A DNA stretch of 64,000 nt from Hemiscyllium ocellatum (Eukaryota). This document shows positions 801 to 26,818 of the stretch, piece by piece. The position numbers and the translations under genes were made by a program. The notes under the pieces were generated by a model. It had not been told where the DNA came from. It made no database searches and worked only from the letters and a program-made list of their open reading frames with translations. The DNA lies in assembly GCF_020745735.1 (NCBI RefSeq), contig NC_083447.1:21780755-21844754 (forward strand). Reading direction: 5' to 3'. Each line of letters begins with the position of its first letter. Within the stretch, counting starts at the first letter, position 1.

Positions 801-1003
801 GTTCGTAAACGTCGTTCAGTTCTTTTCGAGAGTTATCATCCCTCCGCTCTGGTATCATTGCAGTGAAATCATTGTTTTTAAAATCTCCGGCAGTACATTT
901 GTCTTGTCGTTCTAAATGGGGAGGGAGGAGAGATGGTGCTTCGGGCTGTCCTCAACAGGACGAATAAGTGATGTCGTTGACAGCTGCTTCCTGCTGCCTT
1001 TGA

Positions 1004-1034
1004 GGTTTTTGTTGAGCTGCTCCACCTCTCTGTG
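1004..1034 (-). other. Aberrant recombination signal sequence of V1: CACAGAG - 15-bp spacer - ACAAAAACC
   Basis: Consensus nonamer at 1004-1012, heptamer with one mismatch at 1028-1034, spacer 1013-1027 of 15 bp (neither 12 nor 23). Confidence 0.9.
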
Positions 1035-1330
1035 AATACACCAGGCACAGTAATAAACAGCCGAATGATGCGCCTGCAGGTTGCGAGACTCCAGGTTAAA
1101 GTCAGAGCCACTCGGCCGTGTGGCGGTGAAACCGTCCGCCACTCCTTCTTCATTCACATTTCCTGCAGCTGCAGAATAAAACATCAACTGCAGCTCCTTT
1201 CCCGGGTATTGTCTGTACCAGAACATGTCACCGGTACTCTCACCCTTCACCGTGCACCTCAAGTCCACTGCCTTGCCGAGGGACCTGGAGACGCTGCTGG
1301 GAGTCTGAACGACTCTCGCTGTCTTCACGT
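1035..1330 (-). CDS. TRBV: TCR beta V exon (V1); open frame, RSS defective (IMGT 'ORF'-type segment)
   Basis: Acceptor CCCTTTCTTAG. Translation (Y)VKTARVVQTPSS...LRC...MFWYRQYPGKELQLMFYS...FTATRPS..F.L.S.NLQ..SAVYYCAWCI has the conserved Cys, Trp and YYC of a V domain and the CAW end typical of TRBV30-like genes. Confidence 0.85.
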
Positions 1331-1433
1331 CTAAGAAAGGGAAAAGGTCAATAAACAGAGCAATTGTTACCCAGAAGGAGAAAGGAATAGAGTGTAAGTG
1401 TTCCCTCAAATTATTAGATGAACAATCATTTAC

Positions 1434-1470
1434 ATTGCAGTAACGTCATGAGGCTCAGTAAGAGATACAT
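1434..1470 (-). CDS. TRBV: Leader exon of V1 (MYLLLSLMTLLQ, phase 1)
   Basis: ATG at 1470, hydrophobic peptide, GTAAAT donor, 103-bp intron. The phase joins the V exon in frame, and the 37-bp length equals the V2 leader. Confidence 0.85.
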
Positions 1471-1590
1471 CTTTTTTACGTTAATCTTTTCCTGTATGAA
1501 CGCGAACAGAATCCAATCTTGTCTGGAACTGGAACCAGTTACTTTCAAATCAATGAGAGAAATGTGACGGATTCAGGAAATGACTTGGGT

Positions 1591-1621
1591 GTGCACACGC
1601 CCCTCCCCTCTGATGGAAAGC
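1591..1621 (-). promoter_or_regulatory. Candidate V promoter module shared with V2
   Basis: Plus-strand GTGCAC-ACG-CCCCTCC-CC-TCTGAT-GGAAAGC versus GTGCAC-CT-CCCCTCC-G-TCTGAT-TGAGAGC upstream of V2. Confidence 0.4.
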
Positions 1622-2597
1622 TCCATGTCTGTCTCTCTCTGTTTCTTGTTGCAAGAGGAACAGTGGTGAACATGAGGTTTCCAAAGGGAAGCGACAGTGG
1701 GGAAAACACTGGCAGGTACAGCTCAAGGTGAGATTTTGTTGCTTTGTGGGATTCGTGAACACAGTTGCCTGATATTGGCAGTCGACAATTTCTAGCAATT
1801 GCTGATATTTTGTTGAATTTGTAAAGAAACAGCATTTTCATTAGATTAAAAACCATCCGACCGTGACAGATGAGAACACTTCTCCGACCGCGAAACCCTT
1901 CTCCAGAATGGAAGAGGCAGACCAGCAGTTTTGGATGGTGCCTGAAATTTTGATGATAGTCTTTGCTAATAAAAGATTTGTTGACCCTAGGGTCAATGTG
2001 GAGAACTCCTGGTCTTCTCCCAACTGTATGGGGTTTTGCTTCCCTGGACCCTTTCATTTTTCTCTGAGATTTCTTCGCTCATTGAACTTGTGGAATTCTC
2101 CCCTACTGAAGGCTGTGGAGACCTAGTCACAGACTATCCCTTTCTTGAATATATTCAATTTTTAATTCCAAAGACGTCAGCGGTTTGGGGGAGAAAGCAA
2201 GAACTTAGTATTGAAACAGACGTGATCATATTGAATGGCAGATTATGCTCGAAGATATGAATAACTTGCTCTTCCGATGTTAAAAGTCGAAACAATTACG
2301 ACTGAAGTTGAGAGATTAATTGACTTGTGCAAATAAAGGAGGATTTCTTTGCCTTCACTGAGAGTTCTTATTTTCCCTCAGTCAAGATGTCTGGCATTTA
2401 CTCTCTCCCAAAACACGGCCAGTTCAAGTCGGAGATTCCTATGTTTTAATAGGGTCAGTGTGTAAACGAATGGTTAGTGGAGGTGAGTAGATTGAATTTA
2501 TGCATCGATCCATTCTGGCCCATTTGATTGGCGGCGCAAGCTTGAGGGGCAATTTGGTCTCTGTACCTGTACCAGCCCCAGGTGTATTTCATGGTGC

Positions 2598-2618
2598 TAA
2601 AGTGCCCTCTAGTGCACC
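2598..2618 (-). promoter_or_regulatory. Candidate CTCF-binding element between the two V segments
   Basis: Minus-strand GGTGCACTAGAGGGCACTT matches the CTCF core CCACYAGRKGGCRS at all but the first C. Motif match only. Confidence 0.4.
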
Positions 2619-2989
2619 AATAGAAAAGTAATTCAAAGTCGTCATGAAGTCTGCACTGCTCTCTTCCGATTTCCATTAATTTCTCTTCAATTTTCTATCA
2701 ATTGCTTCTTTTCAGTGCATTGTTCCGAATTCATTGTGTTTCTGCGAATTCCACATTCTTACTATCTCGACAAAGAAAAATGCATTTCTCCTGACTTCAT
2801 GTTTAGATTTACTTTTAGAGACTGTCGTGACCTCGAGTTTAGAAGTTCCGCAGAGCCTAAATTATTGAACCCAGTTTTCAACAGCTTCCTGCTTTTCAAC
2901 AGATACGAACCTGCTCAAACTTCCATGATGGCTGAGAGCTTTACCTTTATTCAATTTCACATTCACCCTCAGCACTATCACACTACCAG

Positions 2990-3420
2990 AAAGGATGTAG
3001 AGACTTTGAGGGGTTGCAGAAAAGATCTACTAGAACGTTGCCTAGTTTGAAGGGTTTTATAGCGTCGGAGGATGCAGGGCGATCTGATAGAAGTTTATAA
3101 TACAATGAACAGTCGAAGTCTTTTTCCTCAAGGTAGAAATGTTATTTACTTGGGGACATAAGTTTAAGGCAAAAGGAGCAACTTTAAAGGAAATGTGAGA
3201 AGTTTTTTTTTATAAAAAAGCTCAGGCTGGAAGTGTTGGAATGCGCTAGTACAGGAGGTGCTGGAGGCGAATGCAACGGCAACTGTTAAGAGCCATTGTG
3301 ACGCAGGCATGAATAGGCAGAGAACGAGAGATACAGACCGCGTAGAAGTTTCTAGTTTAGAAAGGCGTCGTGTGTTAGGACAGAGTTGAAGGATCTGTTC
3401 CTGTGCTCTGTTTTCTTCTA
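2990..3420 (+). mobile_element. CR1 LINE 3' end (decayed)
   Basis: GATGTAGAGACTTTGAGGGG..GCAGAAAAGAT, GGCGATCTGATAGAAGTTTAT and a 3' UTR ending CTGTTCCTGTGCTCTGT. Confidence 0.7.
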
Positions 3421-3542
3421 ACAATATCTCTACAGGTCATTACTTTCTATCCCCTCCATTGTTGCCCATTTTATAAAAACAGGAAAAAAAATGCAAACCC
3501 GTCAGGTTTTGACGATAACAGTTGCTTCCTGTTACCGTTTGG

Positions 3543-3581
3543 GGTTTTTGTTGAGCGGCTCGCTCTCGCTGAATCACTGTG
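3543..3581 (-). other. Canonical 23-RSS of V2: CACAGTG - 23 bp - ACAAAAACC
   Basis: Perfect heptamer at 3575-3581, perfect nonamer at 3543-3551, spacer 3552-3574 of 23 bp. Confidence 0.97.
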
Positions 3582-3883
3582 AAGACTCCAGGCGCAGTAA
3601 TACACGGCTGATTGATTCGCTTGGAGGTTGGAGGATTTCAGGCTGAACTTGGTGTTACTCGGTCTGTCAGCGGTGAAACCGTCCACCGGCTCCTGTGGAT
3701 TCACGTACTGTGCTGTATTGGAGTAAAACATCAGCTGTAGCTCTTTTCCTGGGGACTGTTTGTACCAGTACAAGTAGAGAGTACTACTGCTGCTGCCCTC
3801 CACATTGCACTCCAGTTTCACTCCCTCTCCGGGAAATTTGGAGACGGCGGCGGGGTTCTGGTGGATAGTCTGTGATTTCACAT
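3582..3883 (-). CDS. TRBV: TCR beta V exon (V2), TRBV30-like, apparently functional
   Basis: Acceptor CTTTTCCTCAG. (Y)VKSQTIHQNPAAVSKFPGEGVKLECNVEGSSSSTLYLYWYKQSPGKELQLMFYS...DRPSNTKFSLKSSNLQANQSAVYYCAWS aligns motif by motif with recalled human TRBV30 (SQTIHQWPA..LECTVEG..LYWY..LQLLFYS..RP..YLCAWS). Confidence 0.92.
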
Positions 3884-4070
3884 CTGAGGAAAAGACGGGG
3901 AGAGGAAGAGGTCAGTAATTGGGGATAGAGTCGTGGAGAAAGAAAAAGAGATACGTAACGAGAGTGGAAAAGAAAGGAATACAGAGACGTAGAATGAGAG
4001 CAGGATTGTAGGATAGCCAGTTGAAAGAAATTTACAGGTTGAAGTACGATTGCAAATTAGAGTCCCTTAC

Positions 4071-4107
4071 AGTGAAACGCGATGAACAGAGCGAGCAACA
4101 GATACAT
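4071..4107 (-). CDS. TRBV: Leader exon of V2 (MYLLLALFIAFH, phase 1)
   Basis: ATG at 4107 preceded by an in-frame TAA, hydrophobic peptide, GTAAGG donor, 187-bp intron, in-frame join to the V exon. Confidence 0.9.
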
Positions 4108-4146
4108 CTTCCACTTTTAGTTTCCCTTTTTTGAGCAATCTTTATC

Positions 4147-4265
4147 ATTGGTGAGACGGCATTGGAAATACAGTGCACCTCCCCTCCGTCTGATTGAGAG
4201 CCTCGCCCTTCCCTTTTGCCCACGCACCATACCAGTGCCCTCCCAGCCCCACCCTCCCTGATTGG
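4147..4265 (-). promoter_or_regulatory. V2 promoter region: three CCAAT boxes plus shared module (4173-4201)
   Basis: Plus-strand ATTGG at 4147, 4161 and 4261, and the GTGCAC/CCCCTCC/TCTGAT module also found upstream of V1. Confidence 0.4.
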
Positions 4266-4329
4266 ATGATAGGGAGCTGCCGGCAGTATGAAGTTGCCAA
4301 GACACCTTGAGGGATTGTGGAGCGATAAT

Positions 4330-6950
4330 ACTGTGGAAGCGCCAGGCTCAAAATCACTGGAACCATAACCAAAGGCTGTATGGATCGAGCTCAGGAATAG
4401 GAAGGATGCAATCACTTGAACGGGATTCAACTCTCAATAGAAGAACAGATATGTGGACAGATTATTGAAAAAATTGTGACGACAGGATTGATTTGGTGGG
4501 TGATTTTAACTTTTCCCATATTGACTGGGATTCGCCTAGTGTCAGGTGTTTGGATGGGGGAGAATAGGTTAGGTGTATCCAGGACAGGTTTTTGAAAAAA
4601 TATATCAATAGTCCAACTAGGCAAGGGCCATGCAAGACCTGGTATTGGAGAGTGAGACCAGTCACATGATGGAAATTTCAGTGGAGGAGCATTTTGGGAA
4701 CAGTAACCCTCATCTGTAAATTTTAAGTGGATAAGGATAAGAATAGTTCTTGGGTGAAGAAAGTATTAAATTGGTGAAAGACTAATTACTATAATATTAG
4801 ACAGGAACTGTATATTTTAAGGTAAATCCAGCAAGTGGGAATCTTTTAAAGTCCAGTTGAATAGAGTTCAGGACCAGCAGGTTCTGATGGATGATGAGAC
4901 TGGGAACCTTGGACATAAAAGAAGTTGTCAGATGAATCAAAGAATCCATTACAAATACAAAGGGAACAGGAAAGAACTCAAGGAATTAGGGAAGATGAAA
5001 GGGGCCATAAAACATCTTTGGCAAACAAGATAAAGGGAAAATCCCGAGACATTTCGTACATGGGGAGCAAGACAATAGCTAGGGTACACTCAAGGACAGA
5101 GGAGATAACTTATGGATGGAGTCAGAAAAAGTGGTTAAGGTCTTTGCTGAGTGCTTTGCACTGGTATTCACAAAGGAGGAGGACATGATTTTTGGTGAAT
5201 CTCAGGAGAGTTATGTTGATCTTTGAGGGCATGTCAATAAGAAAAAGGAGGAGGTTTTGAGTGTTCTAAAATGCATGAAGTAAACATATTCTCAGGACCT
5301 GATGGATTCTATCTGAAAATGTTGAAGGAGGCAGGTGAGGAAATTGCTGGGGCCTTGTATGAAATCTTTGTATCCTCATTAGTCACAGCAGAGATCCCAG
5401 GGGACTAGAGAATAGCCAGTATAACATTCCTTTATTTAAGAAGGGCAACAGGGGTAATCCAAAAACTGACAGCCCGTTGATCAGTGGTAGGGAAAAAAAA
5501 TGGAGAAAATTCTTAGGGATAGATTAACTCACATTTGGAAAATATGGATCCTGATGTATTTTGTCCAGGTTTTTTTTATGAAGGAAGGTTGAGACAGAGG
5601 TGGCAAGTAGTCTGCTCAAAGCCAATGAAATAAACAGCTTGTAAGACCTTGGGGTTTTACTTTCAAGTTGGAACAATCAAAGCAGCTTGAATGTGTAGGG
5701 CCAAGATCCCACAGAACCAGGATTTTTAGTTTAGCTTTTAGTACCTGTTGCAGGGATCTTGAAGCTGGATGTGGAAGCTCTTGTTCCTCTCTCTAGTGCA
5801 GCTAAAAGCTGGGGTTGTCATCCTGCTGCTAGATATACTTGTGAGACAATTGATATTACTTAATTTGCCTTTGCAAGGTGGGTTTATGGTGTGTTACTAT
5901 ATTGGAACAGTTAATGAGTAGTTCATTATTTTGTTCAGCATTTCAATGCTTACAGTTAAACCAATTCCTTTCTTTTATTTTAGTCTGTCTGTACTTTAAT
6001 TGTAATCTGAGTAAAGTGTGTTTTGCTTCAGACCTGCAGTTTTGATCAATTGAATTTTACCCCTTGTTTTTAAAATAAAAAAGTTAGAGTCTCAGCTATC
6101 TCCTTGACATGTTTTGAGGTGGTTTACTCTGGTCCATAGCAATAGGCAGCATGGATTTGTGTAGGGAAGGTTGTATCTCACAAACTTGATTGAGTTTTTT
6201 TTGAAGAAGTGACAAAGATGTTTGAGGGCAGGGCTGTAGATGGTTTCTATATGGGGCATAGCAAGGTCTTTGATAAGTTGGTTGGCTGATACAAAAGGGT
6301 CACATGTGATCTGCAGTTAGTTAGTTTGAAGGATACAGAACTGGCTTAGTCATAGAAGGCAGACAGTAACAATGGAAGGCTGTGTATCTGGCTTGAGATT
6401 TGTGACCAGTGATGTTCCATAGGAATCAGTGCAGAGAACCCTGTTGTTTGTAATATATACATAAATGATATGGAGGAAGATGTAGGTTGCCTGATTTCTG
6501 AATTTATGGATTACACAAGGATTGAGGGAGCTGCAGATAGTGAGAAGGACTGCTGGGGGATACAGCAGGATATAGATAAGCTAGAGACATGGGTAGTGAA
6601 ATGTCAGGTGGAGCTTAATCTGGAAAATGCAAGGTGATAGTATTTTGGAAGATCTAATGCAGGAGGAAAGTATACAGGAAATGGCAGAAATCTGAGTAGC
6701 ATCAACATACAAAGGGATTTAGGCTTACAGGGCCACAGTTCCCTGAAAGTGGCAACACAAGTGGATAAGGTGGTCAAGAAGCATATGGCATGTTTGCCTT
6801 CGTCAATTCAGGCACAAACTATAAAAATTGGCAAATCATTGCTGCTGTATAGAACTTTAGTTTGGCCACATTTCAAGCATTGTGTACAGTTACAGCCACC
6901 ACAACACTAGCAGGATGTGGAGGCTTTTGAGAGGGTACAGTAACAGTTTA
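4330..6950 (+). mobile_element. Decayed CR1 LINE ORF2 (endonuclease to RT), interrupted by an LTR-like insert
   Basis: Recognisable WIELRN, GDFNFP.IDW, GPDG, KGNRGNP, FDK, DDTRI and HYRKDV equivalents with many stops and frameshifts. Confidence 0.75.
5555..6140. mobile_element. Probable solo LTR nested in CR1
   Basis: About 590-bp non-CR1 insert starting TGTATT and ending ATAGCA, with CR1 sequence resuming on both sides and a second copy at 243-566. No clear TSD. Confidence 0.45.
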
Positions 6951-6954
6951 CATA

Positions 6955-7310
6955 GATATAGAACACAGAACAATACAGTGCAGAACAGGCCCTTCAGCCC
7001 TCAATGTTGCACCAACCTGTGAACTATTCTCAGCTCGTCCCCCAACACCATCCCAAAATCATCCATGTGCTTATCTAAGGATTGTTTAAATCTCCCTAAT
7101 GTGGCGGAGTTGACTACATTAGCAGGTAGGGCATTCCACGCCCTTACCACTCTCTGTGTAAAGAACCTGCCTCTGACATCTGTCTTAAATCTATCACCCT
7201 TCAATTTGTAATTATGCCCCCTCGTACATGCTGACATCATCATCCTAGGAAAAAACTTTCACTGTCTATCCTATCTAATCCTCTGATCTTCTTGTATGTC
7301 TCTATCAATT
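6955..7310 (-). mobile_element. CR1 (HER1-type) 3' end, younger insertion
   Basis: ORF 7001-7243 ([26 protein letters not shown]) and an ATAGAAC-type tail. Confidence 0.85.
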
Positions 7311-7314
7311 CAGT

Positions 7315-7680
7315 ATGTAGCCTCGATTGGAGGGTACTAACAATGAGGAGATTTTGGATAAAGTTAATTTGTTTTCACTTGAACCTCGAAAGATGAGGTG
7401 CAACCTAAAAAATGTTTACAAAATTGAGAGATGTGGATAGTTGGCGTGTTTTTCCCAGGGTAGACACATCAATTATGAGAAAATGTAAGTTTTTAAAAAG
7501 ATGTGAGAGGCAATCTTTTGTATAGAGGGTGGTAAATACCTGTAATGCGCTGCCAGGGTTGGTGGTTCCAGCAGATGCAGTAATCACATTTAAGAGGTAC
7601 TTTGCCAGATATACCAATAGGTAGGGGCTGGAGGGGTATGGACCATGTAGAAGCAAAGACCATGTTGAAGCTTGTTATGG
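7315..7680 (+). mobile_element. CR1 3' fragment (decayed)
   Basis: Continuation of the 4330-6950 copy through the RT C-terminus and 3' UTR. Confidence 0.6.
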
Positions 7681-8959: not shown

Positions 8960-9590
8960 GACTGAAAAATGCTGCAATACAAAAGGTTCTGGGTCTCCTC
9001 ATGCATGAACACGATCACAAATATAAGTTTGCCTTGGGGGCGGGGAGCAAGTAATTAAGAGGGCAAATGGAATGTTGCCCTTTGTTATAAGTGAGGAAGG
9101 TTTGCTGCAGCTGTACAGGACATTAGTGAAACCACATCTAGAATATTGTGCTCAGTTTTCTTTCCTTTATTTAAGGAAGGATACACTTGCATTGGAGGGA
9201 ATTTAGTGAAAGTCCACTGGGTTAATTCCTGGGATGGCAGAGCTGCCTTGTGAGGAAAGCTTAGTAGGTTGGGCCTATAATTACTAGAGATGCAAAGAAT
9301 GAGAGGTGATCATGTTGAAATGTATAAGACTCGATAGGGACTTGAGAGGATGGATAACTAGAACAAAATGTTTTCCCTTATGTCAAGGAGTCTAGAACTG
9401 GGAGACAGCTTGAAGACAAAGCAGATCTCATTGAGATAAGGAGTTGTTCTAGTCTCTCAAGCATTAAACTTTGGAATTCACTTCCCCTGGGAGCAGTGAT
9501 ATCTATCTTGTTGAATAGATTTGAGGCTAAGTTGGATATTGGATTCACAAGGGACCATGAGGGCAGAGAGGAAATTGAAATTAAGGCCTG
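8960..9590 (+). mobile_element. CR1 3' fragment (decayed)
   Basis: [16 protein letters not shown] and RGDHVEMYK equivalents. Confidence 0.7.
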
Positions 9591-9940: not shown

Positions 9941-10244
9941 GGCACGGTGGCACAGTGGTTAGCACTGCTGCCTCACAGTGCCAGAGACCCGGGTTCAATT
10001 CCCGCCTCAGGTGACTGACTGTGTGGAGTTTGCACGTTCTCCCCATGTCTGCGTGGGTTTCCTCCGGGTGCTCTGGTTTCCTCCCACAGTCCAAAGATGT
10101 GCGGGACAGGTGAATTGGCCATGCTAAATTGCCCGTAGTGTTAGGCAAGGGGTAAATGTAGGGGTATGGGTGGGTTGTGCTTCGGCGGGTCGGTGTGGAC
10201 TTGTTGGGCCGAAGGGCCTGTTTCCACACTGTAAGTAATCTAAT
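9941..10244 (+). mobile_element. HE1-type SINE, full length
   Basis: tRNA-like head GGCACGGTGGCACAGTGGTTAGC..GGGTTCAATTCC and tail CCTGTTTCCACACTGTAAGTAATCTAAT. Confidence 0.92.
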
Positions 10245-11459: not shown

Positions 11460-12790
11460 AATCCCATTTTCCTGCATATGGTCCATATCACTCTATTTCC
11501 TGTCTATGTGTCTGACAAAATGCTTCTTAAACTTTGCAAACCTACCTGTTTCTACTACTTCCTCTGGGAGCATGTTCCAGGAATCCGCCATCCTTTGCAT
11601 GTAAAACCTTCTTCGTGTATCTCCTTTTAACTTTCTCTCTTTCACCTTGAGCCTATGCGCCCTAGTATTTCCATCCTGGGGGAAAAGGGTCTGACTATCC
11701 ACTCTATCTACAGCTCTCAAAATTTTATAAGCTTGTATCAGGTTAACCCTCAGCCTCAGACATCTCGTGAAAATGCCCACTTTTGTCCAGCCTCTCCTGA
11801 TAGCTAATACACTCCAATCCAGGCAACATCCTAGTAAACCTCTTTTGCACCCTCTCCAAAGCCTTCACATTCTTCCTCTAGTGTGGTGACACAATATTCC
11901 AAATGTGGCCTAACTAAAGTTTTATACAGCTGCAATATGACTTGCCAATTTTTATATTTGATTCCTCGATGAAGAAGGGTTACACCCAAACCGTTGACTT
12001 TTCCACCTCCTGAAGCTGTCTGGCTTGCTGTGTTCTTCCAATCTCCTGCTTATCTACCTTTAGTGGATGAAGACGAACATGCTGTATCCCTCCTTTCCCA
12101 CCTTATCCACTTGTGTTGCCACTTTCAGGGAGCTATGGACTTGGATCACAAGATCCCTCTCCATAAGGGAAGTCTACCCTGACAAACCTTGCCAAATGCT
12201 TTAGTAAAATCCGTGCACACAATATCCACTGCCCTACCCTCATCAATCATCTTTGTCACTTCCTCAAAAACACAATCAAATTTGTGAGACAGGACCCCCT
12301 TTGCATAGAGCCAAGCTGACTATCCCCAGTAAGCCCATTCTTCTCCAAATGCACATAGATCCTTTTCCTAAGAATCTTCTCCAAACGTTTTCCAACTACT
12401 GATGTAAGACATACCACCCTATAAATTCCTAGATTATCCCTGCTGCCCTTCTTAAATAAAGGAGAAGCATTGGCTAATCTCCAGTCTTCTGAGACCTGGC
12501 TTAGGCGAAAGAAGATACAAAACCCTCTGTCATGGTCCCAGTAATCTCCTCCTTTGCATCCCTGTGTATCCTGAGTTGGATCCCATCAGGCCCTGGTGAC
12601 TTACCTACTTTAATGTTTTTCAGGACACCAACACCTCCACATTTTTAATATCAATGTGCCACAGAGTATTAACAAACTCCTGTCTAAACATTCCATCATC
12701 CATGTCCTTCTCTGTAGTGAATACTGATGTGAAGTACTCATTAAGGAGCTCACCCACTTTCTCAGTGTTAGGGAAAGCTGTTCAAGATGA
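11460..12790 (-). mobile_element. CR1 LINE fragments (RT and 3' end)
   Basis: ORF 11493-11780 (NLIQAYKILRAVDRVDSQ..TRAHRLKV) plus upstream RT-like remnants. Confidence 0.75.
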
Positions 12791-13289
12791 GTCGCAAGTC
12801 CCAGATTAGCAGCACACATCAACCTTTACTTGGAGCTCTTACCATGCAGCATGGACCATTCTGCCTTTTCCAGGTAAATACAGCATTTTTGTAATTTCTC
12901 ATTACAAAACTTACACTGAGGTTATTGGTAGTCACGTACCCCTAATCTATACATCCAAACCTGTAAACAATCAATCAATGATGGACACCTCTATGGACAG
13001 CCCTATGGACATCCCATGATCTCCTGATGTTCACCAAGACGGCTTTATCATCTGTCCTTGGGCCCTTACAATGCATCCCACTAATTTATATTCCAATGCT
13101 GGCAGGTATATTTCTTCCTAAATGTTTGTCAGCTGCATCATCGCCAACAAATTAGACACTTGCTTATTTCAAAGGACTCTTCTAATTCCATCATTCATAG
13201 CATTCCCTTCTATCCTTATTATAAGAGATATGAAAAGATACTAATTTCTGCTAATTGCTATAAAATTCGTAATATTAGTTCCAATGTAA

Positions 13290-13878
13290 AGTTGTCACTT
13301 ACAGAATTAAGGAGAACCCCAAAGCCTTTTATTCATACATAAGAAGCAAGAAAATAACTAGATAAAGCATTGGTCCACTAAAAGGTCAGGAAGGAAGCTT
13401 GTGTGTTGAACGTGAGAAAATGGGTGAGATTCTCAATGATTACTTCACATCAGTGTTCACTGAGGAGAGGGACATGATGAATGTTGAGATTAGGGATAGC
13501 CTTTTGTTTTCTCTGGATCACGTTGACATAAGGAGGGAGGATGTGTTGGGTAGGCTAAAGGACATTAAGGTGGATAAATTCCCAGGACCAGATGGGATCT
13601 ATGCCAGGTTGTTGAGGGAGGTGAGAGAGCTAGGGCCCTGAAAGATATCTTTGTAGCATTCTTAAACACAGGTGAAGTTCCGGATGACTGGGGAGTTGCT
13701 GATGTTGTCCTCCTCTTCAATAAAGTGTAGTAAGGATATTCCAGGTAACTACAGACCAATGAGTCTGACTTCAGATACTGAGGGATAGGATCTATTTATA
13801 TTTGGAAGAGAATGTGCTTATTGGTGAGAGGCAACATGGTTTTGTGCTGGGGAGATCGTGCCTTACCAAATTAATAGA
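13290..13878 (+). mobile_element. CR1 ORF2 fragment
   Basis: ORF 13399-13641 (EILNDYFTSVFTEE..DKFPGPDGIYARLLRE). Confidence 0.8.
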
Positions 13879-14168
13879 TTAGATAACTTACAGGCCCTTT
13901 GGCCCAACAGGTCCACACTGTCCAACTGAAGCACACCCACCCAGACCAATTCCCCTACACCTAACGCTACAGGCAATTTAGCATGGCCAATTCACCTAAC
14001 CTGCACAGTTTTTGACTGTGGGAGGAAACCGGAGTACCCAAAGGAAACCCATGCAGACACAGGGAAAATATGCAAACTCCACACAGTCAGTCGTCTGAGG
14101 CAGGAATTGAACCCAGGTCTCTGGTGCTGTGAGGCAGCAGTGCTAACTGCTGTGCCACCATGCTGCCC
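13875..14168 (-). mobile_element. HE1-type SINE
   Basis: Reverse complement of the same head, body and tail. Confidence 0.9.
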
Positions 14169-14170
14169 AC

Positions 14171-14400
14171 AATCCAAATCCACTGTCTAAACCTATTGCC
14201 CAACTCCTAAGGATCTGTATCCCTCTGCTCCCTACCTACTCGTGCATCTGTCACGCATCTATTAATTTGGTAAGATACGATCTCCCCAGCACAAAACCAA
14301 ATTGCCTATCATCAATGAGCCCATTCTGTTCCAAATGTAAATAGATCCTATCCCTCCGTACCTTCTCCAGAAACTTTCCAACCAATGAAGTCAGTCTCAC
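14171..14400 (-). mobile_element. Internally deleted CR1 fragment, inverted relative to 13290-13878
   Basis: ORF 14251-14451 (LTSLVGKFLEKVRRDRIYLHLEQNGLIDDRQFGFVLGRSYLTKLI) joined directly to a 3' UTR-like piece. Confidence 0.7.
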
Positions 14401-15299: not shown

Positions 15300-16990
15300 G
15301 TGGCCATTTTGCGTCACATCTGGCCATGGGCTGCTCCAACTCTCCAGCTCCACACACAATGTCTGTCCTTTGTACTTGAGTGGACCTACCCTTTCCCGAC
15401 TTACCCTCCCACTCCTTACGTACATATAAAATGTCTTGGGATTCTCCATATTCCTCATTGCTGATGACATTTCATGGCCCCTTCTATCCCTCCCAATTCC
15501 TTGCTTTAGTGGATGGCACAGTAGCACAGCAGTTAGCACTGCTGCCTCCGAGACCCAGGTTCAATTCCTGACTCAGGCGACAGACTGTGTGGAGTTTGCA
15601 CATTCTCCCCGTGTCTGTGTGGGTTTCCTTTGGGTACTCCTGTTTTCTCCCACACTCCAAAGATGTGCAGGTCAGGTGAATTGGCTATGCTAAATTGCCT
15701 GTAGTGTTAGATGAGGGGTAAATGTAGGGGTATGGGTGGGTTGTGCTTGGGCGGGTCGGTGTGGGCTTGTTGGGCCGAAGGGCCTGTTTCCACACTGTAA
15801 GTAATCTAATCCTTTTCTGTTTCCTTTACACTCCTCAAAAGCCTTGTTTGATATAAGTTTCTTAGACTTTACAATTTCTTCCTTTTTCTTTTTGACTAAA
15901 CTTTTAAACATCTCTTTTTATCAAAGATTCCTGAACATTGCCATTCTTATCTCTCATCCTCATAGGAGCGTGCTGATCCTAAACTCTGACCTTTATAAGA
16001 TTCCCATATGTCAGATGGGAATTTGCTCCCTCTATCAGCTGCCCCGGATATAATTTCTTTTGTTCCTGCTTTGTAATTAGCCTTTGCCCAGTTTAGTACT
16101 TTCGCCTGAAGACCAGTCTTATTCTTCTCCATAACTCTGCCAGAATTATGATCACTGTTCCTTAAATGCTTCCCAACTGAAACTCTGACCACCTGGCCAG
16201 ACACATCCAGCCGTGCAAGCTCTAATATGGTGTCTTACTTCATTATCTATGTTTCATGGGACCCTCTTGGATGCACCTAACAAATTCTACCCCATCTAAG
16301 CGCCAAGGGAGCCCCAATCAATAGTGGGTAGGTTGAAATCACTCACTACAATAACCCTGTTGTTTTTATTTTGTTTCATGACCTGCTTACATATCTGTTC
16401 CTCTAGCTGCTGCTGGCTATTGGGAGGTCTACAATATAATTCCAGAATAGTGAGTATACTTTTCCTCTTCTTAAGTTCTACCCATATTACCTCACTGGAT
16501 GAACCTTCCAAAATGTTCCCTCTTAGAACAGCTGTGTTATTCTCTATATTCAGTCATGCAACTTCCCCATTCCTCTTATATCTCCCTCTGTCTCATTTGA
16601 GACATCTTAACCCGAAAACATTGAGCTGTCAGTCCTGGCCTTCTCTCGAAAAAGTTTCTGTAATGGCTAACAATTCATAATCCCAGGTACTAATCCAGGC
16701 TTTAAATTCATCTGCCTTATCTATTATACTCTTTGCATTACAATCAATGCATTGCAGACTGTCAGTCCTGCAATGTCCATTAACCTGGCAATGCGTCTTC
16801 TCCTCTTAAGACTTATTTGACTTAACCTGTGCCTTCTTCTTAATCACTCCACATGCTGACCTACTGCGCTGGTGCCTACTCCCTGTCACACTGGTTTAAA
16901 CTCTCCCAAATGGCACCAGTAAAACTGCCTGCAAGGAGATTGGTGCTCCACCTGTTCAGGTGCAACCCATCCTTCTTTGACAGATCCTAT
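15300..16990 (-). mobile_element. CR1 LINE 5' ORF2 (endonuclease) fragment, split by a SINE
   Basis: ORFs 16296-16511 (VIWVELK..YCRPPNS..VSDFNLPTIDW) and 15255-15539 (ENPKTFYMYVRSGRVSRERVGPLK). Confidence 0.8.
15511..15810 (+). mobile_element. HE1-type SINE nested in CR1
   Basis: Same head, body and tail as the other copies. Confidence 0.9.
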
Positions 16991-19900: not shown

Positions 19901-20430
19901 CCTGAGCTTCCAGTTGCCTGTCAGTTCAACACACCACCCTGTTCCCTGGCCAATATCTCTCCCTCAGCCTTGCTGCAGTGCTCCAACAAAGCTCAGCATA
20001 AACTGCAGGAAAACACCTCATTTTCCAGTTGGGGACCCTGCAGCATTCTAGATTCAACTTCAGGGCTTGAACTCTCTTATGTCCCTACCCCAACCCCACA
20101 CACGAGGCCTTGTTATCACATATTCTGTTATTACACACAACGCATTGTTAGCCACAAACAGTCTCCACTAACAGCAATTCATCCTCCTAGCCAGGATTGT
20201 TATCCACTCCTTTGTCTGTCCAACAGTTTTTCTCTCTCTTTGGGCACTATCCCCATGTATTGTTTACTCCTTATCCCTCTACCCACCCTACCTCCTGCAT
20301 AAAAACCAACATTTTCCAAGCTACCATCAGTTCTGAGGAAGGGTCATTGGATTCAAAACATTAACTGTGATTTCTCTTCAAATAAGTTGCCAGACGTGCT
20401 GAGCTTTTCCAGCAATTTCTATTTTTATTT
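16990..20430 (+). mobile_element. Decayed Penelope-like element in partial tandem array (partial RT - pLTR - N-terminal/RT/GIY-YIG - pLTR)
   Basis: Direct repeats at about 17385-17520 and 20325-20430. The RT segment 16995-17260 is duplicated at 18755-18990, with AMGTRM-like RT motif A/B remnants and GLHYIGETK (GIY-YIG) in ORF 19790-20302. Confidence 0.7.
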
Positions 20431-20572
20431 ACAGGTCCCACCTGTCCTGGAAGTAATCCCAATCATCTAGATATCTGAAGCCACCCTTCCTACACAAGCT
20501 CTTTAGCCCCTGCATTCAATTATGTTATCTTCCTACTTTTGGCCTCACTCGCACTGGCACAGGAAGTATATG

Positions 20573-20893
20573 GTCAGCACGGTGGCACAGTGGTTAGCAC
20601 TGCAGCCTCACAATGCCAGAGACCCGGATTCATTTCCCACCTCAGGTGACTCTCTGTGTGGAATTTGCACATTCTTTCTGTGTCTGCGTGGGTTTCCTTC
20701 GGGTACTCCAGTTTCCTCCCACAATCCAAAAATGTGCAGGTTAGGTGAATTGGCTATGGTAAATTGCCCGTAGTGTTAGGTGAAGGGGTAAATGTGGGGG
20801 AATGGGTCTGAGTGGGTTGCGCTTCGGCGGGTCGGTGTGGATTTGTTGGGCCGAAGGGTCTGTTTCCACACTGTAATAAAACCTAAATCTAAA
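20573..20893 (+). mobile_element. HE1-type SINE
   Basis: Same head, body and tail, moderately diverged. Confidence 0.9.
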
Positions 20894-21980
20894 AGTAATC
20901 CTGAGATTACAACCCTGGAGGTCTACTTTTCAACTTCTTACTCAACTCCCTAAATTCCATTTGCAGGACATCATCTCTGTTTCTGCCATGTTGTTAGTAT
21001 CAATATGGACAACGATCTCTGGCTTCCTACCATCTCCTTTCAGAATATTACGTGCCCACTCTGAAACATCTATGACCCTGGAATCAGGAAGGGAGAAGGT
21101 TGTGGGAAGAAACTATTTGTGTCTCTGGGTGCTTCTGTCCCGTGGCATACCACAGCGATTAGTACTGGATCTCTTATTGTTTGTGATATAGATATTGAAG
21201 AAAATAGGGCAGCAGAGTAAGCAATGCAGTGTTCTGGCTCCTGAGCCCTGGAGCTTGAACACTCCATCCATTCTTCCCTCTTATTACCTTCTTTCTCATT
21301 TTTAAAAAAACTTTTAACTGATGGTGGAGTAATGCTCTTGAGCCCAAGGCTCATTCGGTCTGTCTGCTTTTCTTTTTGTTTCCTTTTTTTTCTCTTTACT
21401 TATGTGTCTTTTTTAATCTTTCACTCACCTCTTGGAGGTGGCAAGTGATCTCCACATGAGTCCAGTGTGGAATCGAGTGAGGCGCTTACTTTTCTGGGGC
21501 AAGCGCAGGAACTGGCATTGGAATCAGCAGCTGTTTTATTGGTGGAGACAACATCAGTGAGGTGGGCCCAGTGGCGAGAGATGGCGCCTGAGGATTGGCA
21601 ACATTTTTATTGGTTGGGTCTGGTGCTGATGGTGGGAAAGCAGTTGCAGATTGGCCATCATGTTTACATTGATGAGGTGGGCCCAGTAGCAAGACATGAG
21701 ATTCCAACATTTGTGGGTCCGTGCATGTAACAGTAAGGCGGTGGTGCAGGAGAATTGGCCCAGCAGTGAAAGATGGTGCCTGGAGAGTGGCAACCTCAAC
21801 ATCGGTTGGGTCCGGTGAGGGTAGCTGTGAGGTGGTGGGGTAACGATAGCGATGCAGGCGTTATTGACAATGAGCAGACTGAGGATAGATGCAAGCTCAG
21901 AGCAACAGAAGGACCATGGGATGCTTGTTTACAGATCCCTGAAGGCATCAGGTCATGTTAATAGGGTCATTAAGAAGACA

Positions 21981-22298
21981 GAGCGGCACGGTGGCACAGT
22001 GGTTAGCGCTGCTGCTTCACAGCGCCAGGGACCCGGGTTCATTTCCCGCCTCAGGCGACTGACTGTGTGGAGTTTGCACATTCTCCCCGTGTCTGCGTGG
22101 GTTTCCTCCGGGTGCTCCGGTTTCCTCCCACAGTCCAAAGATGTGCAGGGCAGGTGAATTGGCCATGCTAAATTGCCCGTAGTGTTAGGTAAGGGGCAAA
22201 TGTAGGGGTATGGGTGGGTTTCGCTTCGGTGGGTCAGTGTGGACTTGTTGGGCCGAAGGGCCTGTTTCCACACTGTAAGTAATCTAATCTAATCTAAT
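21981..22298 (+). mobile_element. HE1-type SINE, near-consensus, inserted in CR1
   Basis: Intact head and (TAATC)n tail. Confidence 0.92.
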
Positions 22299-22299
22299 A

Positions 22300-23340
22300 A
22301 TCCAACAGAGGTTGGTTGTGGAAGGTTGCCTTTCGGACCGAACATCTGTGACCAGTGGGCTTCCACATGGATTGGTGCTGTCATTTATAGAAATGTTTGA
22401 ATGAAAACATAGGAAATATAGTTAGTAAGTTTGCAAATGACACCAAAATTGGAGGTGTAGTGAATGGCAAAGAAGATTACCTCAAAGTACAACGGGATCT
22501 TGCTCAGATGGGCCAATAGGCTGAGGAGTGGCAGATGGGGTTTAATTTAGAAAAATGTGAGGTGCTGCATTGTGGAAAAGCAAATCTTAGCAGGGCTTAG
22601 ACACTTAATGGTAAGGTCCTAGGAAATATTGCTGAACAAAAAGACCTTCAAGTGCAGGTTTATAGTTCCTTGAAAGTAGAGTCACAGGTATATAGTACCA
22701 TGAAGAAGGCGTTTGGTATGCTTTCCTTTTATTGGTCAGAACATTGAGTATAGGTGTTCGGAGGTCATGTTGTAGCTGTACAGGATGTTGGTTAGGCTAC
22801 TTTTAGAATATTGCATGCAGTTCTGGTCTCCTTCTTATTGGAAGGATGTTGTGAAACTTGAAAGCGTTCAGAAAACATTTACAAGGATGTTGCCAGGGTT
22901 GGAGGATTTGAGCTATAGGGAGAGGCTGAATAGGCTGGGCTGTTTTCCCTGGAGCATCAGAGGCCGAGGGTTGACCTTCTAGAGGTTTATAAAATCATGA
23001 GGCTCATGGATAGGATAAATAGACCAAGTCTTTGCCCTGGACTGTGGGAGTCCAGAACCAGAGGACATACATTTAGGGTGAGAGGGGAAAGATATAAAAG
23101 GGACCTAAGGGGCAACTTTTTCATGCAGAGGGCAGAATGATCTTCAAGAGGCACTGACGGAGGTTGATACAATTGCAGCATTTAAAAGGCATCCAGATGG
23201 GTGTATGAATAGGAAGGATTTAGAAGGTTGTGGGCCAAGTGCTGGCAAATGGGACAAGATTGGGTTGGGATATCTGGTCAGCATGGATGCATTGGACCAA
23301 AGGTTCTGTTACCATGCACTATCTCTCTATGATTCTATAT
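22300..23340 (+). mobile_element. CR1 RT and 3' end
   Basis: FANDTKIGG, ORF 22785-22982 (LEYCMQFWSPSYWKDVV) and a tail ending CTCTATGATTCTAT. Confidence 0.85.
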
Positions 23341-23344
23341 GGGA

Positions 23345-23940
23345 AACTTGCCTTTCAGTCAGGGCATAGATTATCAGAGGAAGGAGGTTACGTTGGAGTT
23401 GTATAAAACTTACCCTCAGACACAGCTGGAATGCTCTATGCAGTTCTAGTCACGATAGGAAGGAAGTAATTGCACTTGGGGCTGCAGAAGAGATTCACCA
23501 GGTTGTGGCCTGGAAAGGAGCAGTTCAATTAGTTAAAATGGGTTGTTTTATTTGGAGCAGAGAAGGCTGAGAGAGAACCTGACTCAGTTGAATCAAACTA
23601 TGAGCGACATGGACAGGGTGGATAGTTAGCAGCTGTTCCCCTTTGTTGAAGGGTGAGTAACAAGGAGACATAGCTTTAAGGTAAAGGACAAGAAGTTTGG
23701 AGAGGATTTGAAGAAAAGATTTACCATCTGGTGTGGAAATGTGGAATGTACTATCTCGGAGGATAGTTGAGGAAGAAAACCTCACAATCTTTAAAGAATA
23801 TTTGGATAACCACTTAAATTATCAGAATATTCAAGATTATGGACTAGCTGCAGAAAAATGGGACTCACATAAATTTAGAGTAGTTTTTGTTGGTGAGTCT
23901 TAATAGACTGAAGGACCTCTTCTGTCCTATATGATTCTAT
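23345..23940 (+). mobile_element. Older CR1 3' fragment
   Basis: LYKTYPQTQLECSMQF-like segment and a 3' UTR ending ATGATTCTATGAT. Confidence 0.6.
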
Positions 23941-25479
23941 GATCACACCTTGGCCTAACTGTCTAATCCTCTTGCACTTTATGCTCCTTTCAGCATCTTG
24001 CCTTGTTCCACTCTCCTCCACTCTTTTTCTCACTCTTCGTTCTCTGCTGCTCTTACAGATACCTTTTACTATAAAGGTCCCTATTCTCTAATCTTCCCTA
24101 AATCTCTCACTCCATGTAAACCTCCCAATCCGTGTTGGTTCTCTTTGTCATCTCACACTACTCTCTGTGTTTCAATCACAGATAAAGGCATCTGTGCTCA
24201 AATATTCACGCCTTTCTCCATTCACAATTCCCTTCTGCACCTCAATAGTACTTTGTATATCTGTAACTGGAAACAAATATATAATTCATTTTCAACTGGT
24301 AGTACAGAACATGGATATTACTGAAAAAATATGTTTTGTTGAAAGTTTGCACCTTGCACCCATGAGGACAATTTGCAAGAAATAAAAAAAAATGGAAAAC
24401 AGAATTTATACTCTACGCTGATTGTTTGGGAATAGGACTCGGGTGTAGAAGCATTGCCATGGAGAATGCAACAATTGATGTCATCTCTGCCACACCCATC
24501 CTGCCACTAACCTCAACGGCCTAGTATTTTATTTTTCTTCCTTGTCCTATTTCCAAACTCACATTTTCGTTGTGTCCTCATGCTCTGTTTGTTCAAATGA
24601 ATTATTCTTATCCTCTTGCTCCTCTTCCCACTAAGTTGCTGATCAACCATCTTTTCCTCCTAGGTCACCAATTTTAGCTGTTGTAATAAATGGATTTCTC
24701 TCTTCCAGTGTTGCCAGTCTCTCCTTTAAATCTACCATCATCGTCTCTTTTCTTCAAAAAATCAATCCTTGAGCTCTCTGTTCATGCACATCCAATCTCA
24801 CATTCTTCTCCAATGTTCTTCAGCATATTATGTCTTCCAAATCCATTACTGTATTTCTTGGAGCTCTGTTATTGAATTCATCCAATCGGGTTTGGTATGA
24901 CACAGAAATTCTTCTTATCAAAGTCATAACTGACATCCTATGGTAAATATCCTATGGGGGGGTAAATTTTCCCTCCTGTGTTTCTCAATCATCTGCAGCT
25001 TTTGCTCCAGTCAATGACACTATCCCCCTCCAGTACCTCTCCTCTGTTGTCCAGTTGGGTGGGACTACTGTCACTTGGCTCCATTCTAAACTACTACTCA
25101 TAGTTACCTACAACCTAAAAATCTTTCAGTCTCACTGGAACCAATGTCATCTGAGGCACAGTGTTAGTTTTCTCATGTATGCAGATACTCTCACCAACAT
25201 CTCTCTTGACTGCTCCAATTTTGTAATTTTAAGACTACTTATCAAACATTCAGTTCTGGATGAGCAGAAATTTCATCACTTAGATGTTAATAAGATTCAA
25301 TTTATTGTTTTTACTCACTTCTCTGTTCCTTGGGTACTGAATCTATCCCTGATAACAGTCCGAGATTGAGCTAGCCTTTTTACCTTTGATTCTGAGAAAA
25401 GTTTCTGACCTCAAATTCAGGACATTGCTAAGACACTCTTTTTCATTTTGAAAACCCATATTTTTCTCCCTAAATTTCT

Positions 25480-25740
25480 ATTTCTCTCCACTTGCCTGCA
25501 TGTGCATCTTTCTCTTTCTGTCTGTATATAACTGTGTATCTCTCATTCTCTGTTTTGCCTTCCAAATATATCTCTAGCTAGATGTGTTTGTATATCTTTG
25601 TGTGAATTTGTTTATCCATTTGTTCCACTATATCCTCCTCTCTATATATCTCTATCCCTCTCTTTATATCTCTACCCATTTCTCTGTCTTATTCTTTATG
25701 TCCCTCTCCCTATCTCATTTACTCTCTGTCTCTTAAACTT
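25480..25740. repeat. CT/TA-rich low-complexity degenerate microsatellite
   Basis: Runs of CTCT, TATATC and TCTCTATCCC downstream of the C1s 3' end. Confidence 0.6.
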
Positions 25741-26008
25741 AAACAAATAAAACATGCACACACAAGAATGGGGTGTCATCATTTTAAATGGGAAGCAGAA
25801 CTATTTCAATTCAATTAACTTCACATATGGAAAGTGAAAGAGAGAGAGATTTGAAGACAGAGATTGTGTGAGAAAGAGACTGAGAAATAGGAAGAAGGGT
25901 ATGACCTCCACAAAACAACTTGTTTCACAGAAGGAGAAAAAGAGGAACACAAAGAGACAGAAAGGGAAATGGCGAGAAAGAGGGAAATATGCAAATTCAC
26001 CATTACAC

Positions 26009-26014
26009 TTTATT
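26009..26014 (-). terminator. Likely polyadenylation signal (AATAAA) of the C1s-like gene
   Basis: AATAAA about 26 nt after the TGA stop on the coding strand. Confidence 0.55.
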
Positions 26015-26039
26015 GTGATTGATGGCACAATGGATTAAT

Positions 26040-26818
26040 TCAGTTCTCCTCACTGCTTTCATATTTCTTTATGGTTGTGTCAATCCAGTCCAGGTACTTC
26101 TCCACATGAGTATACACCCCATTAATGCCACAATTCTTGGGTCCAAAAGACACAATGCCCCTGGTCACATAACGATTCAGGTCCCGGGCCTCCTTGAACA
26201 CAAAGGGTCCCCCACTGTCACCCTGGCAGGAGTCCACACCACTTTTTCCAGCACAGATCATGTTGGAGGTGAAATTTGGCTTTGGTTCCTCATAGTTTGA
26301 ATCCGTGCAGTGGTCCATGCTGGCAATAGGTATCTCAGCATACTGCAGGAAGACAGTCTTCTGATGTCTTTCTGTTCTTCCCCACCCTGAAATGTAGCCC
26401 AGTTTGCCATGCTGCAGTGATGAAGCCTTTTTTGGGTTAGGCAGGCACACAGGGGACAATTTTCCTCCAAGTTTGACCTTCTGCTTGAGTTTAATCAGGG
26501 CAATGTCATGATTAAAGTTGGGTTGTGCTCCTTTGACTTGTTTCTTATAGTCTGGGTGCATAATGACCTCTTCCACAGGGAGTTGGTTTTCTCGTGACCT
26601 ATGTCTCATGTCAACAATCCCACCATGAATATTCACCTGATGCGAATTGTCAAAGAGATGAGCAGCCGTCAGCACCCAACCATCGGATATCAGGGCTCCA
26701 CCCCCATATGTAGATCCACCAATGATCAAACGCAGCTGCCAGGGAAAATCGCCCAACTCAGCTGGTCTGCCACCGAAGATGCGCCCAGCTTTAGAGGAGA
26801 GTCGGCTCATTCCACAGA
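26040..26818 (-). CDS. C1S: C1s-like final exon: activation site and whole serine protease domain
   Basis: Acceptor CTCTTCCCAG then (V)[12 protein letters not shown]|IFGG. Triad TAAH/HDIAL/GDSGG intact, Ser codon AGT (26214-26216), no histidine-loop cysteines (GGGALI, TAAHL), S1 Asp (VDSC), no introns. These are C1r/C1s/MASP2/3-type hallmarks. Confidence 0.95.

Follow-up and report, generated by a model that had tools for sequence, protein, structure and literature searches.

Where does the TCR-beta (TRB) locus of a shark end, and what lies beyond its last V gene? A 64-kb stretch of DNA from the epaulette shark, Hemiscyllium ocellatum (hereafter the window; all coordinates are positions in it), raises this question. 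A first-pass annotation had proposed that two TRBV segments and the 3' end of a complement C1s-like gene lie here on one strand, with no gene in between. All three are present, on the minus strand. The TRB–C1s boundary is real and fairly ordinary, and we consider it likely that the TRB locus of the epaulette shark has its distal boundary here, where the V genes V2 and V1 face the C1s-like gene.

Two V genes and a C1s-like gene

V2 and V1 are 54% identical and share a two-exon layout, with an ATG leader exon, a GT donor, a short intron, and an AG acceptor. Both match the Pfam V-set domain (E values of 3e-16 for V2 and 2.5e-15 for V1) and have the expected anchors Cys23, Trp41, and Cys104 (in LEC/LRC, WY(K/R)Q, and YYC). 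Their recombination signal sequences (RSSs) face lower coordinates.

4107-4071, minus strand: V2 leader exon L-PART1 (MYLLLALFIAFH), donor GTAAGG
3883-3582, minus strand: V2 V exon, intact, acceptor CAG
3581-3543, minus strand: V2 canonical 23-RSS; heptamer CACAGTG at 3581-3575, 23-bp spacer, nonamer ACAAAAACC at 3551-3543
1470-1434, minus strand: V1 leader exon L-PART1 (MYLLLSLMTLLQ), donor GTAAAT; matches the leader in model P0155
1330-1035, minus strand: V1 V exon, reading frame open, with Cys23, Trp41, and a YYCAW end
1034-1004, minus strand: V1 recombination signal, defective; heptamer CACAGAG at 1034-1028, 15-bp spacer, nonamer ACAAAAACC at 1012-1004

V2 is a complete germline TRBV gene, with leader exon, V exon, and consensus 23-RSS, and looks functional. 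Its ortholog in the bamboo shark Chiloscyllium punctatum has 92% protein identity and 96% DNA identity, and dN/dS between the two is ∼0.9, a value from very few changes that does not demonstrate selection. The first-pass annotation had assigned an RSS to each V segment; that of V2 is intact, but the defect in that of V1 had been overlooked. Relative to all three V1-type copies of C. punctatum, the V1 signal has an 8-bp deletion, the loss of TGACTCAG, and because of it the spacer has only 15 bp instead of 23 bp. Since a 15-bp spacer breaks the 12/23 rule, V1 is probably unable to rearrange and, despite having kept an open frame, is most likely a nonrearranging relic.

The C1s-like gene was mapped by tblastn with C1s queries from shark, chimaera, bichir, frog, and horse. 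The window contains every exon from CUB1 (second half) through the serine-protease (SP) domain, in the order CUB-EGF-CUB-CCP-CCP-SP, while the signal-peptide exon and first CUB1 exon lie past the end of the window (64000).

60042-60431, minus strand: CUB1, second half (strong match from 60051 to ∼60230; the outer limits are those of the longest weak HSP)
53626-53775, minus strand: EGF exon (tblastn)
51094-51294, minus strand: CUB2 exon, first half (tblastn)
43466-43624, minus strand: CUB2 exon, second half (tblastn)
41342-41470, minus strand: CCP1 exon, first half (approximate; aligns with C1s of Callorhinchus, frog, horse, and bichir)
36353-36445, minus strand: CCP1 exon, second half (approximate; in model P0004, skipped in RefSeq isoform X2)
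34699-34854, minus strand: CCP2 exon, first half (approximate, tblastn)
27895-27996, minus strand: CCP2 exon, second half (approximate, tblastn)
26818-26040, minus strand: serine-protease domain in a single exon of 779 nt including the stop codon; AATAAA at 26014

The AGY-type C1r/C1s/MASP lineage is defined by a protease domain confined to one exon, an active serine encoded by AGY, and the lack of the histidine-loop disulfide. The shark protease domain has an R-IFGG activation site, the catalytic His in TAAHL/TAAHLF, Asp in DIAL, and Ser in GDSGGP; the active serine is encoded by AGT (26216-26214), and the histidine-loop cysteine is missing. Among structures in the PDB, the gene scores highest with human C1s (199 bits), followed by MASP-2 (169 bits) and C1r (140 bits), and its nearest named homologs are all called C1s or C1s-like by NCBI. 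By protein similarity, C1s is thus a closer match than either C1r or MASP. No second C1r/C1s-like gene is found within 10 kb upstream of the C1s-like gene in C. punctatum; in humans, C1R and C1S lie tail to tail.

The spacer and its conservation in bamboo shark

Between the two loci lies repeat-rich DNA, at least 40% of which recurs elsewhere in just ∼250 kb of comparison DNA.

4108-26013, no strand: spacer of 21.9 kb, repeat-rich, in which no gene was found
9941-10240, 13947-14166, 15507-15806, 20576-20875, and 21985-22284, in the spacer: SINE copies of ∼300 nt
16296-16511, 13399-13641, 7001-7243, and 11493-11780, in the spacer: LINE endonuclease and RT fragments

A further part of the spacer (∼17.5-20.3 kb) appears, judged by motifs only, to hold a Penelope-like remnant. 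The proposal that no further V segment, RSS, or coding exon separates V2 from the C1s-like gene withstood each search. A scan of the entire 64-kb window for RSS-like sites returned two strong sites only, those of V1 and V2, and tblastn with both V domains as queries (E ≤ 50) detected no third V in the window. Likewise, tblastn with 159 proteins revealed neither an Ig exon nor a protease exon from 4.2 to 26 kb, Rfam detected no RNA gene, and Pfam searches of ten spacer ORFs matched a LINE endonuclease and nothing else. A scan for CTCF motifs gave a single match, between V2 and V1, which is no excess over chance.

The same layout is present in C. punctatum. On contig BEZZ01000538.1, V model chiPu_0012188 (1160338-1170201, minus strand) and C1s-like gene chiPu_0012189 (1198547-1232427, minus strand) are consecutive genes with consecutive locus tags. 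Order and strand are alike in the two species, and V and C1s are 19.9 kb apart in C. punctatum versus 22 kb in epaulette shark. On the V side, window positions 5432-2146 align to positions 1-3302 of the C. punctatum sequence L001 with 92% identity, and on the C1s side, positions 29219-22305 align to 40715-47613 of L002 with 93% identity. In a comparison that covered the C. punctatum spacer except for an 8.3-kb stretch, the spacers are collinear with 88–95% identity (six blocks on the C1s side), save for one 2.3-kb inversion. No V is found in the 10 kb downstream of the C. punctatum C1s-like gene. With no gene in between and the order conserved, V2 and V1 are, as had been proposed, the last V genes before C1s.

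The first-pass annotation had itself named an assembly mis-join between 4 and 26 kb as what could undo its reading, and a repeat-rich spacer is the type of sequence prone to scaffolding errors. No such mis-join is seen: an independent assembly from another genus is collinear at both ends of the spacer, with the identities given above, and agrees in order, strand, and distance, and the window has no N runs. We therefore reject a mis-join as the source of the TRBV–C1s junction and regard it as extremely unlikely. A contig of Heptranchias stops 4.7 kb past its C1s gene and is free of V genes up to that point; relative to a spacer of ∼20 kb in epaulette shark, this is uninformative.

Identity and orientation of the V genes

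The assignment of V1 and V2 to TRB draws on structure, profiles, and linkage. V2 was modeled from an alignment of 17 sequences (pLDDT 85.6; a prediction from three sequences reached only 48.7). Among reviewed UniProt models, its top Foldseek match is human TRBV30 (E = 9e-9, TM 0.88, 42% identity over 98 residues), and all matches ranked 1 to 9 are TRBV. When a profile built from 17 shark V genes was compared with the PDB, the TRBV30-bearing beta chains 3hg1_E and 5xov_J outranked all other natural single-V chains; 3hg1_E is MEL5, a TRAV12/TRBV30 receptor (PMC5887915). Both V1 and V2 share 55–56% identity with the V of P0157, a V-J-C model of the bamboo shark C. plagiosum. The C region of P0157 can be aligned over its full length with TCR beta; its connecting peptide is of the TCR-beta kind, and its transmembrane segment keeps the conserved Lys. 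The PDB matches of this connecting-peptide and transmembrane part are all TCR beta and all weak (E ∼0.4).

Some searches could be read as placing V1 and V2 among orphons or in another antigen-receptor locus (TRG, TRA/D, or Ig light chain). The V-J-C model is named "immunoglobulin kappa light chain-like" by NCBI, and phmmer searches of the PDB with a single V are swamped by antibody constructs. However, these top entries each contain several V domains, with summed scores, whereas the best natural single-V chains and the nine top Foldseek matches are all TCR beta, and the linked C region is of TCR-beta type. Moreover, in C. punctatum, five further V genes, which share the same RSS, follow the orthologous pair of V2 and V1 within 20 kb. 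Given these TCR-beta matches, the TCR-beta C region, and an array that continues, the orphon reading is rejected and membership of another locus is highly improbable; that V1 and V2 are TRBV genes, nearer to TRBV than to other V classes, is supported. A protein atlas returned mixed V classes and was not decisive, and a word-indexed protein search with the bare V2 exon returned one metagenomic fragment only, while a longer ORF or protein query reached shark entries.

Orientation was approached through the bamboo sharks. On C. punctatum contig BEZZ01000538.1, the minus strand carries the V genes at 1.08–1.18 Mb, whereas those at 0.757–0.773 Mb, 400 kb from the V model next to C1s, are on the plus strand. 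It is a V of the plus-strand type (89% identity) that P0157 has spliced collinearly to TRBC. V1 and V2 are probably the outermost inverted V genes of TRB, with their orientation relative to TRBC in epaulette shark predicted from the bamboo shark sequences. Alternatively, the V genes on the C1s side could face forward and rearrange by deletion within a second, minus-strand TRB D-J-C cluster rather than being inverted behind the main constant gene. The C. plagiosum locus does have a second gene model with V and C1-set parts, oriented opposite to P0157, making "inverted" a relative term. However, in C. plagiosum, this second C has the forward V genes on one side and the main C on the other, which would leave the main D-J-C between it and the V genes on the C1s side; we find a separate cluster unlikely, though less so than the mis-join or orphon readings.

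Reading along the minus strand leads from the end of the C1s-type gene at 26040, through ∼21.9 kb of transposon-derived DNA, into a V array that starts with V2 and V1. The signal of V2 points toward lower coordinates, the proposed D-J-C side. If V genes on this side are inverted relative to the constant gene, as we propose, V2 would have to reach a D-beta 12-RSS through inversion of the intervening DNA, a route that mammalian TRBV30 takes over a shorter distance.

The suggestion that V1 and V2, should D-J-C lie to their left in the opposite orientation, are equivalents of the inverted TRBV30 fits in part. Their position, judged by the strand switch in C. punctatum, and the best human match of V2 agree with it, but likeness to TRBV30 is common to the whole V family, forward copies included. 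With TRBV30 chains, the profile of the forward cluster scores 88 bits versus less than 83 bits for that of the inverted cluster. By these scores, the inverted V genes do not group with TRBV30 any more closely than do their forward-facing counterparts. One-to-one orthology of V2 and TRBV30 is not established because forward-facing shark V genes are equally TRBV30-like. Identity of 42% between a shark V and human TRBV30 suggests that this V lineage is older than the split between sharks and bony vertebrates.

Ancestry and comparison with known systems

The TRB–C1s adjacency is shown within one shark family only and is without known functional consequence. For annotators, it provides a firm locus end, consisting of the last V gene, a 22-kb spacer, and C1s. 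Papers on tetrapod TRB describe loci bounded on one side by MOXD2/DBHL or CLEC2L and on the opposite side by EPHB5/6 and TRPV6. Literature searches found no paper on linkage of TRB with C1S/C1R, and no map of a shark TRB locus was found in the searchable literature. Rather than a local accident, the junction could be a relic of an ancestral neighborhood of jawed vertebrates, in which TRB with a TRBV30-like inverted V block stood beside C1r/C1s (a region of the human 12p13 type) and from which tetrapods later separated the two, leaving TRB flanked by EPHB6 and TRPV6. We regard this history as improbable. If it is true that distant cartilaginous and ray-finned fish also have C1s beside TRB, the finding would bear on the arrangement of antigen-receptor and complement genes in early jawed vertebrates.

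The gene beyond the boundary resembles complement C1s of the AGY-type lineage (C1r/C1s/MASP-2/MASP-3) in its exon set, single-exon protease, AGT serine codon, Arg-Ile activation site, and missing histidine-loop cysteine. It differs in that its protease domain is ∼40–46% identical to those of mammalian and chimaera C1s.

On the TRB side, the closest parallels are human TRBV30 and mouse TRBV31 (Vbeta14), inverted V genes located 3' of TRBC2. V2 is like them in sequence and fold (42% identity, TM 0.88) and in its 23-RSS, is probably also downstream of and inverted relative to its constant gene, and would likewise join by inversion. But TRBV30 and TRBV31 are each a single V gene, whereas V2 and V1 are at one end of a large, apparently backward-facing V block, which in C. 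punctatum spans at least 110 kb, and the neighbor of TRBV30 is EPHB6 rather than a C1s-like gene. Axolotl, newt, and Chinese alligator are more similar in this respect, with several TRBV genes inverted relative to D-J-C, and those of newt are used through inversional joining (PMC12698447, PMC12529555, PMC11754216). Unlike that of the shark, however, their loci end at TRPV6 and EPHB5/6 (PMC12698447, PMC12529555, PMC11754216).

Two TRBV genes and a C1s-like gene on one strand

All features of interest, the two germline V genes (V1 and V2) at the low-coordinate end and the C1s-like complement protease gene, are on the minus strand. The first-pass annotation placed them accurately, as position 1004 is the end of the V1 nonamer and 26818 is the acceptor of the protease exon. 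Reading frames of the V exons of V2 and V1 are open (Pfam V-set E 3e-16 and 2.5e-15, respectively). The two are 54% identical and therefore belong to different subfamilies.

V genes and their recombination signals (RSSs)
4107-4071, minus: V2 leader exon, donor GTAAGG
3883-3582, minus: V2 V exon, acceptor CAG
3581-3543, minus: V2 RSS, CACAGTG + 23-bp spacer + ACAAAAACC, textbook form
1470-1434, minus: V1 leader exon
1330-1035, minus: V1 V exon
1034-1004, minus: V1 RSS, CACAGAG + 15-bp spacer + ACAAAAACC

Both V1 and V2 are TRBV genes. Single-sequence searches with either gave no informative class assignment, and bamboo-shark proteins were reached by a region-restricted search. Among these is the V-J-C gene model P0157 of Chiloscyllium plagiosum, with a V that is 55–56% identical to V1 and V2, a J that carries an FGDG motif, and a constant part that aligns end to end with the TCR beta chains of TCR-CD3 structures. 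The sole PDB matches to its connecting peptide and transmembrane part are TCR beta chains, which are weak (E ~0.4) and have the transmembrane Lys aligned. The structure of V2 was modeled with confidence (pLDDT 85.6) from a 17-sequence shark V alignment. In a Foldseek comparison with reviewed UniProt models, its top match is human TRBV30 (E 9e-9, TM of 0.88; all 98 residues aligned, 42% identical), and eight more TRBV genes rank next, ahead of any other V class. When the 17-sequence profile was searched against PDB, beta chains 3hg1_E and 5xov_J outranked all other natural single-V chains. Structure 3hg1 is the MEL5 TCR, which uses TRBV30 (PMC5887915).

The protease gene is C1s-like. Its exons, including that of the protease domain, were located by tblastn with C1s proteins of shark, chimaera, bichir, frog, and horse. 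An ORF of 256 residues at 26810-26040 encodes a trypsin-fold domain (Pfam E 8e-54) that scores 199 bits to human C1s, 169 to MASP-2, and 140 to C1r in PDB, and NCBI gives the name C1s or C1s-like to each of its nearest homologs. A single-exon protease domain, an AGT serine codon, and the lack of the histidine-loop cysteine mark the C1r/C1s/MASP-2/MASP-3 lineage, and the domain has all three features.

Other exons of the C1s-like gene (tblastn) and an intronic LINE
~60.4-60.0 kb, minus: second half of CUB1
53.8-53.6 kb, minus: EGF exon
51.3-51.1 and 43.6-43.5 kb, minus: CUB2 exons
41.5-41.3 kb (41342-41470) and 36.4 kb (36353-36445), minus: CCP1 exons
34.9-34.7 and 28.0-27.9 kb, minus: CCP2 exons
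29283-30389, plus: intact LINE reverse-transcriptase ORF, 368 aa, in the intron between the CCP2 exons

As judged from the Chiloscyllium punctatum gene, the first coding exon(s) lie ~3 kb past the window end. Several public models of the C1s-like gene (596, 616, and 572 aa) fall short of the ~680-aa full form. Both CCP1 exons, present in the window, are skipped in the C. punctatum RefSeq isoform X2 (P0159; 616 aa).

The interval between V2 and the protease exon

The first-pass annotation saw no other V exon, RSS, or coding exon between the V genes and the C1s-like gene. No third V gene was found in the whole 64 kb (tblastn with both V domains, E up to 50), no Ig or protease exon was found between 4.2 and 26 kb (tblastn with 159 proteins), and Rfam at its gathering thresholds gave no family, hammerhead ribozymes among them, anywhere in the window. 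When both strands were scanned for RSS-like sequences (CAC-anchored heptamer, nonamer with two or fewer mismatches, spacers of 11–24), the only sites besides those of V1 and V2 were two weak ones near 28.5 kb, at chance level. ORFs in the interval are transposon debris, including a LINE endonuclease fragment (Pfam Exo_endo_phos_2) and several LINE C-terminal tails like that of the intact reverse-transcriptase ORF. These results confirm the observation.

The interval also holds an ~300-nt SINE in five or six copies, in both orientations. At least 40% of the interval sequence is found again within only ~250 kb of unrelated comparison DNA. A C-rich stretch at ~17.5-20.3 kb contains ORFs without a match in Pfam, with motifs of what we take to be Penelope-like elements. 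The C-terminal tail motif of the intact ORF recurs, decayed, at 7001-7243 and 11493-11780.

The adjacency of TRBV and C1s is genuine, as order and strand are the same in C. punctatum and sequences on either side of the interval are collinear. In an independent C. punctatum assembly (BEZZ01000538.1), the V model chiPu_0012188 (1,160,338-1,170,201) and the C1s-like gene chiPu_0012189 (1,198,547-1,232,427) follow each other directly in the annotation and share a strand. In DNA alignments, window 5432-2146 is collinear with and 92% identical to the first 3.3 kb of a C. punctatum V-region sequence (L001), and window 29219-22305 and five more blocks match the 3' flank of C. punctatum C1s at 88–95%, about as C1s introns do. 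V2 and V1 correspond to the C. punctatum V pair nearest C1s, located 19.9 kb from the C1s stop, and the first 10 kb downstream of C. punctatum C1s contain no V gene. The comparison covers the interval except for 8.3 kb of C. punctatum sequence that corresponds to window 12-5.4 kb, where the window has no V gene. Because order, collinearity, and position of the V pair are conserved in C. punctatum, an assembly mis-join of the V genes to C1s is very unlikely.

One segment of 2.3 kb is inverted between species (window 12055-14373 versus 50980-53861 of L002, which includes the C. punctatum C1s-like 3' flank). Copies of the ~300-nt SINE in opposite orientations (13947-14166 and 9942-10158) are at or just outside its ends.

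A deletion in the V1 recombination signal

An alignment to the C. punctatum ortholog and two paralogs shows an 8-bp deletion in V1, TGACTCAG, by which the heptamer lost its last bases and the spacer its first. A heptamer-like CACAGAG and a spacer of 15 bp are left. Under the 12/23 rule, a 15-bp spacer suits neither side. Judged from its signal, V1 is probably dead for recombination. Decay of the V1 lineage is also seen elsewhere. All three V1-type copies in C. punctatum (L001 ~3780, L001 ~19640, and L004 ~10150) are disabled, each in its own way (1-bp insertion, 1-bp deletion, and in-frame TAG), with 23-RSSs that are still canonical. The V1-type copy within the C. plagiosum protein P0155 appears intact. 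The C. punctatum ortholog of V2 is intact and has a canonical RSS; dN/dS between the two is ~0.9 on only ~11 substitutions and hence is little informative.

In C. punctatum, CAC is followed by AGTGACTCAG in 13 of 13 V signals that have an intact Cys104 codon motif (YYC/YFC; L001, L003, and L004), and a perfect AP-1/TRE site (TGACTCA) therefore spans the heptamer–spacer junction. The counterpart in V2 (3575-3569) is TGATTCA. The 8-mer that follows CAC in these signals is exactly what the V1 deletion takes out.

Orientation of the V cluster and the parallel with TRBV30

On the C. punctatum contig, plus-strand V genes lie at 0.757-0.773 Mb and minus-strand V genes at 1.08-1.18 Mb, so both sets have their signals directed toward the stretch that separates them. 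The plus-strand type shares 89% identity with the C. plagiosum V whose splicing to TRBC is collinear over a span of 205 kb, and the minus-strand cluster beside C1s would thus be the one inverted relative to the main TRBC, an orientation that we extend from Chiloscyllium to the window. The C1s-side V genes could also be forward-facing for a second cluster. In the C. plagiosum TRB region, the 205 kb between V and C of P0157 enclose a second gene model with V-set and C1-set domains, encoded on the other strand, suggesting that this species carries two oppositely oriented D-J-C units.

With the C1s-side cluster predicted to be inverted relative to the main TRBC, the conditional suggestion in the first-pass annotation that V1 and V2 are equivalents of the inverted TRBV30 holds for position and best match. 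The match is not specific to the inverted cluster, as forward V genes score higher. With a profile of forward-cluster V genes only, TRBV30 chains score 88 bits and rank 12–13; with one of inverted-cluster V genes only, they score <83 bits and are not among the matches listed. The likeness is common to the whole sampled shark V family and so gives no support for the inverted V genes as specific orthologs of TRBV30.

The first-pass annotation also proposed ancestral linkage, on the premise that the TRB and C1S/C1R regions are linked in birds and some other non-mammals; the literature searched yielded nothing on TRB linked to C1S/C1R in any species. The adjacency of TRBV and C1s is known within Hemiscylliidae only. 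The locus boundary is real and was correctly described, and to it we add the broken signal of V1, the TRBV30-type identity of V2, and conservation in a second genus. In published tetrapod TRB loci, the flanking genes are MOXD2/DBHL or CLEC2L on one side, and EPHB5/6 with TRPV6 on the side of the inverted V genes (PMC11754216, PMC12529555, PMC12698447); the TRBV–C1s boundary is a useful annotation point.
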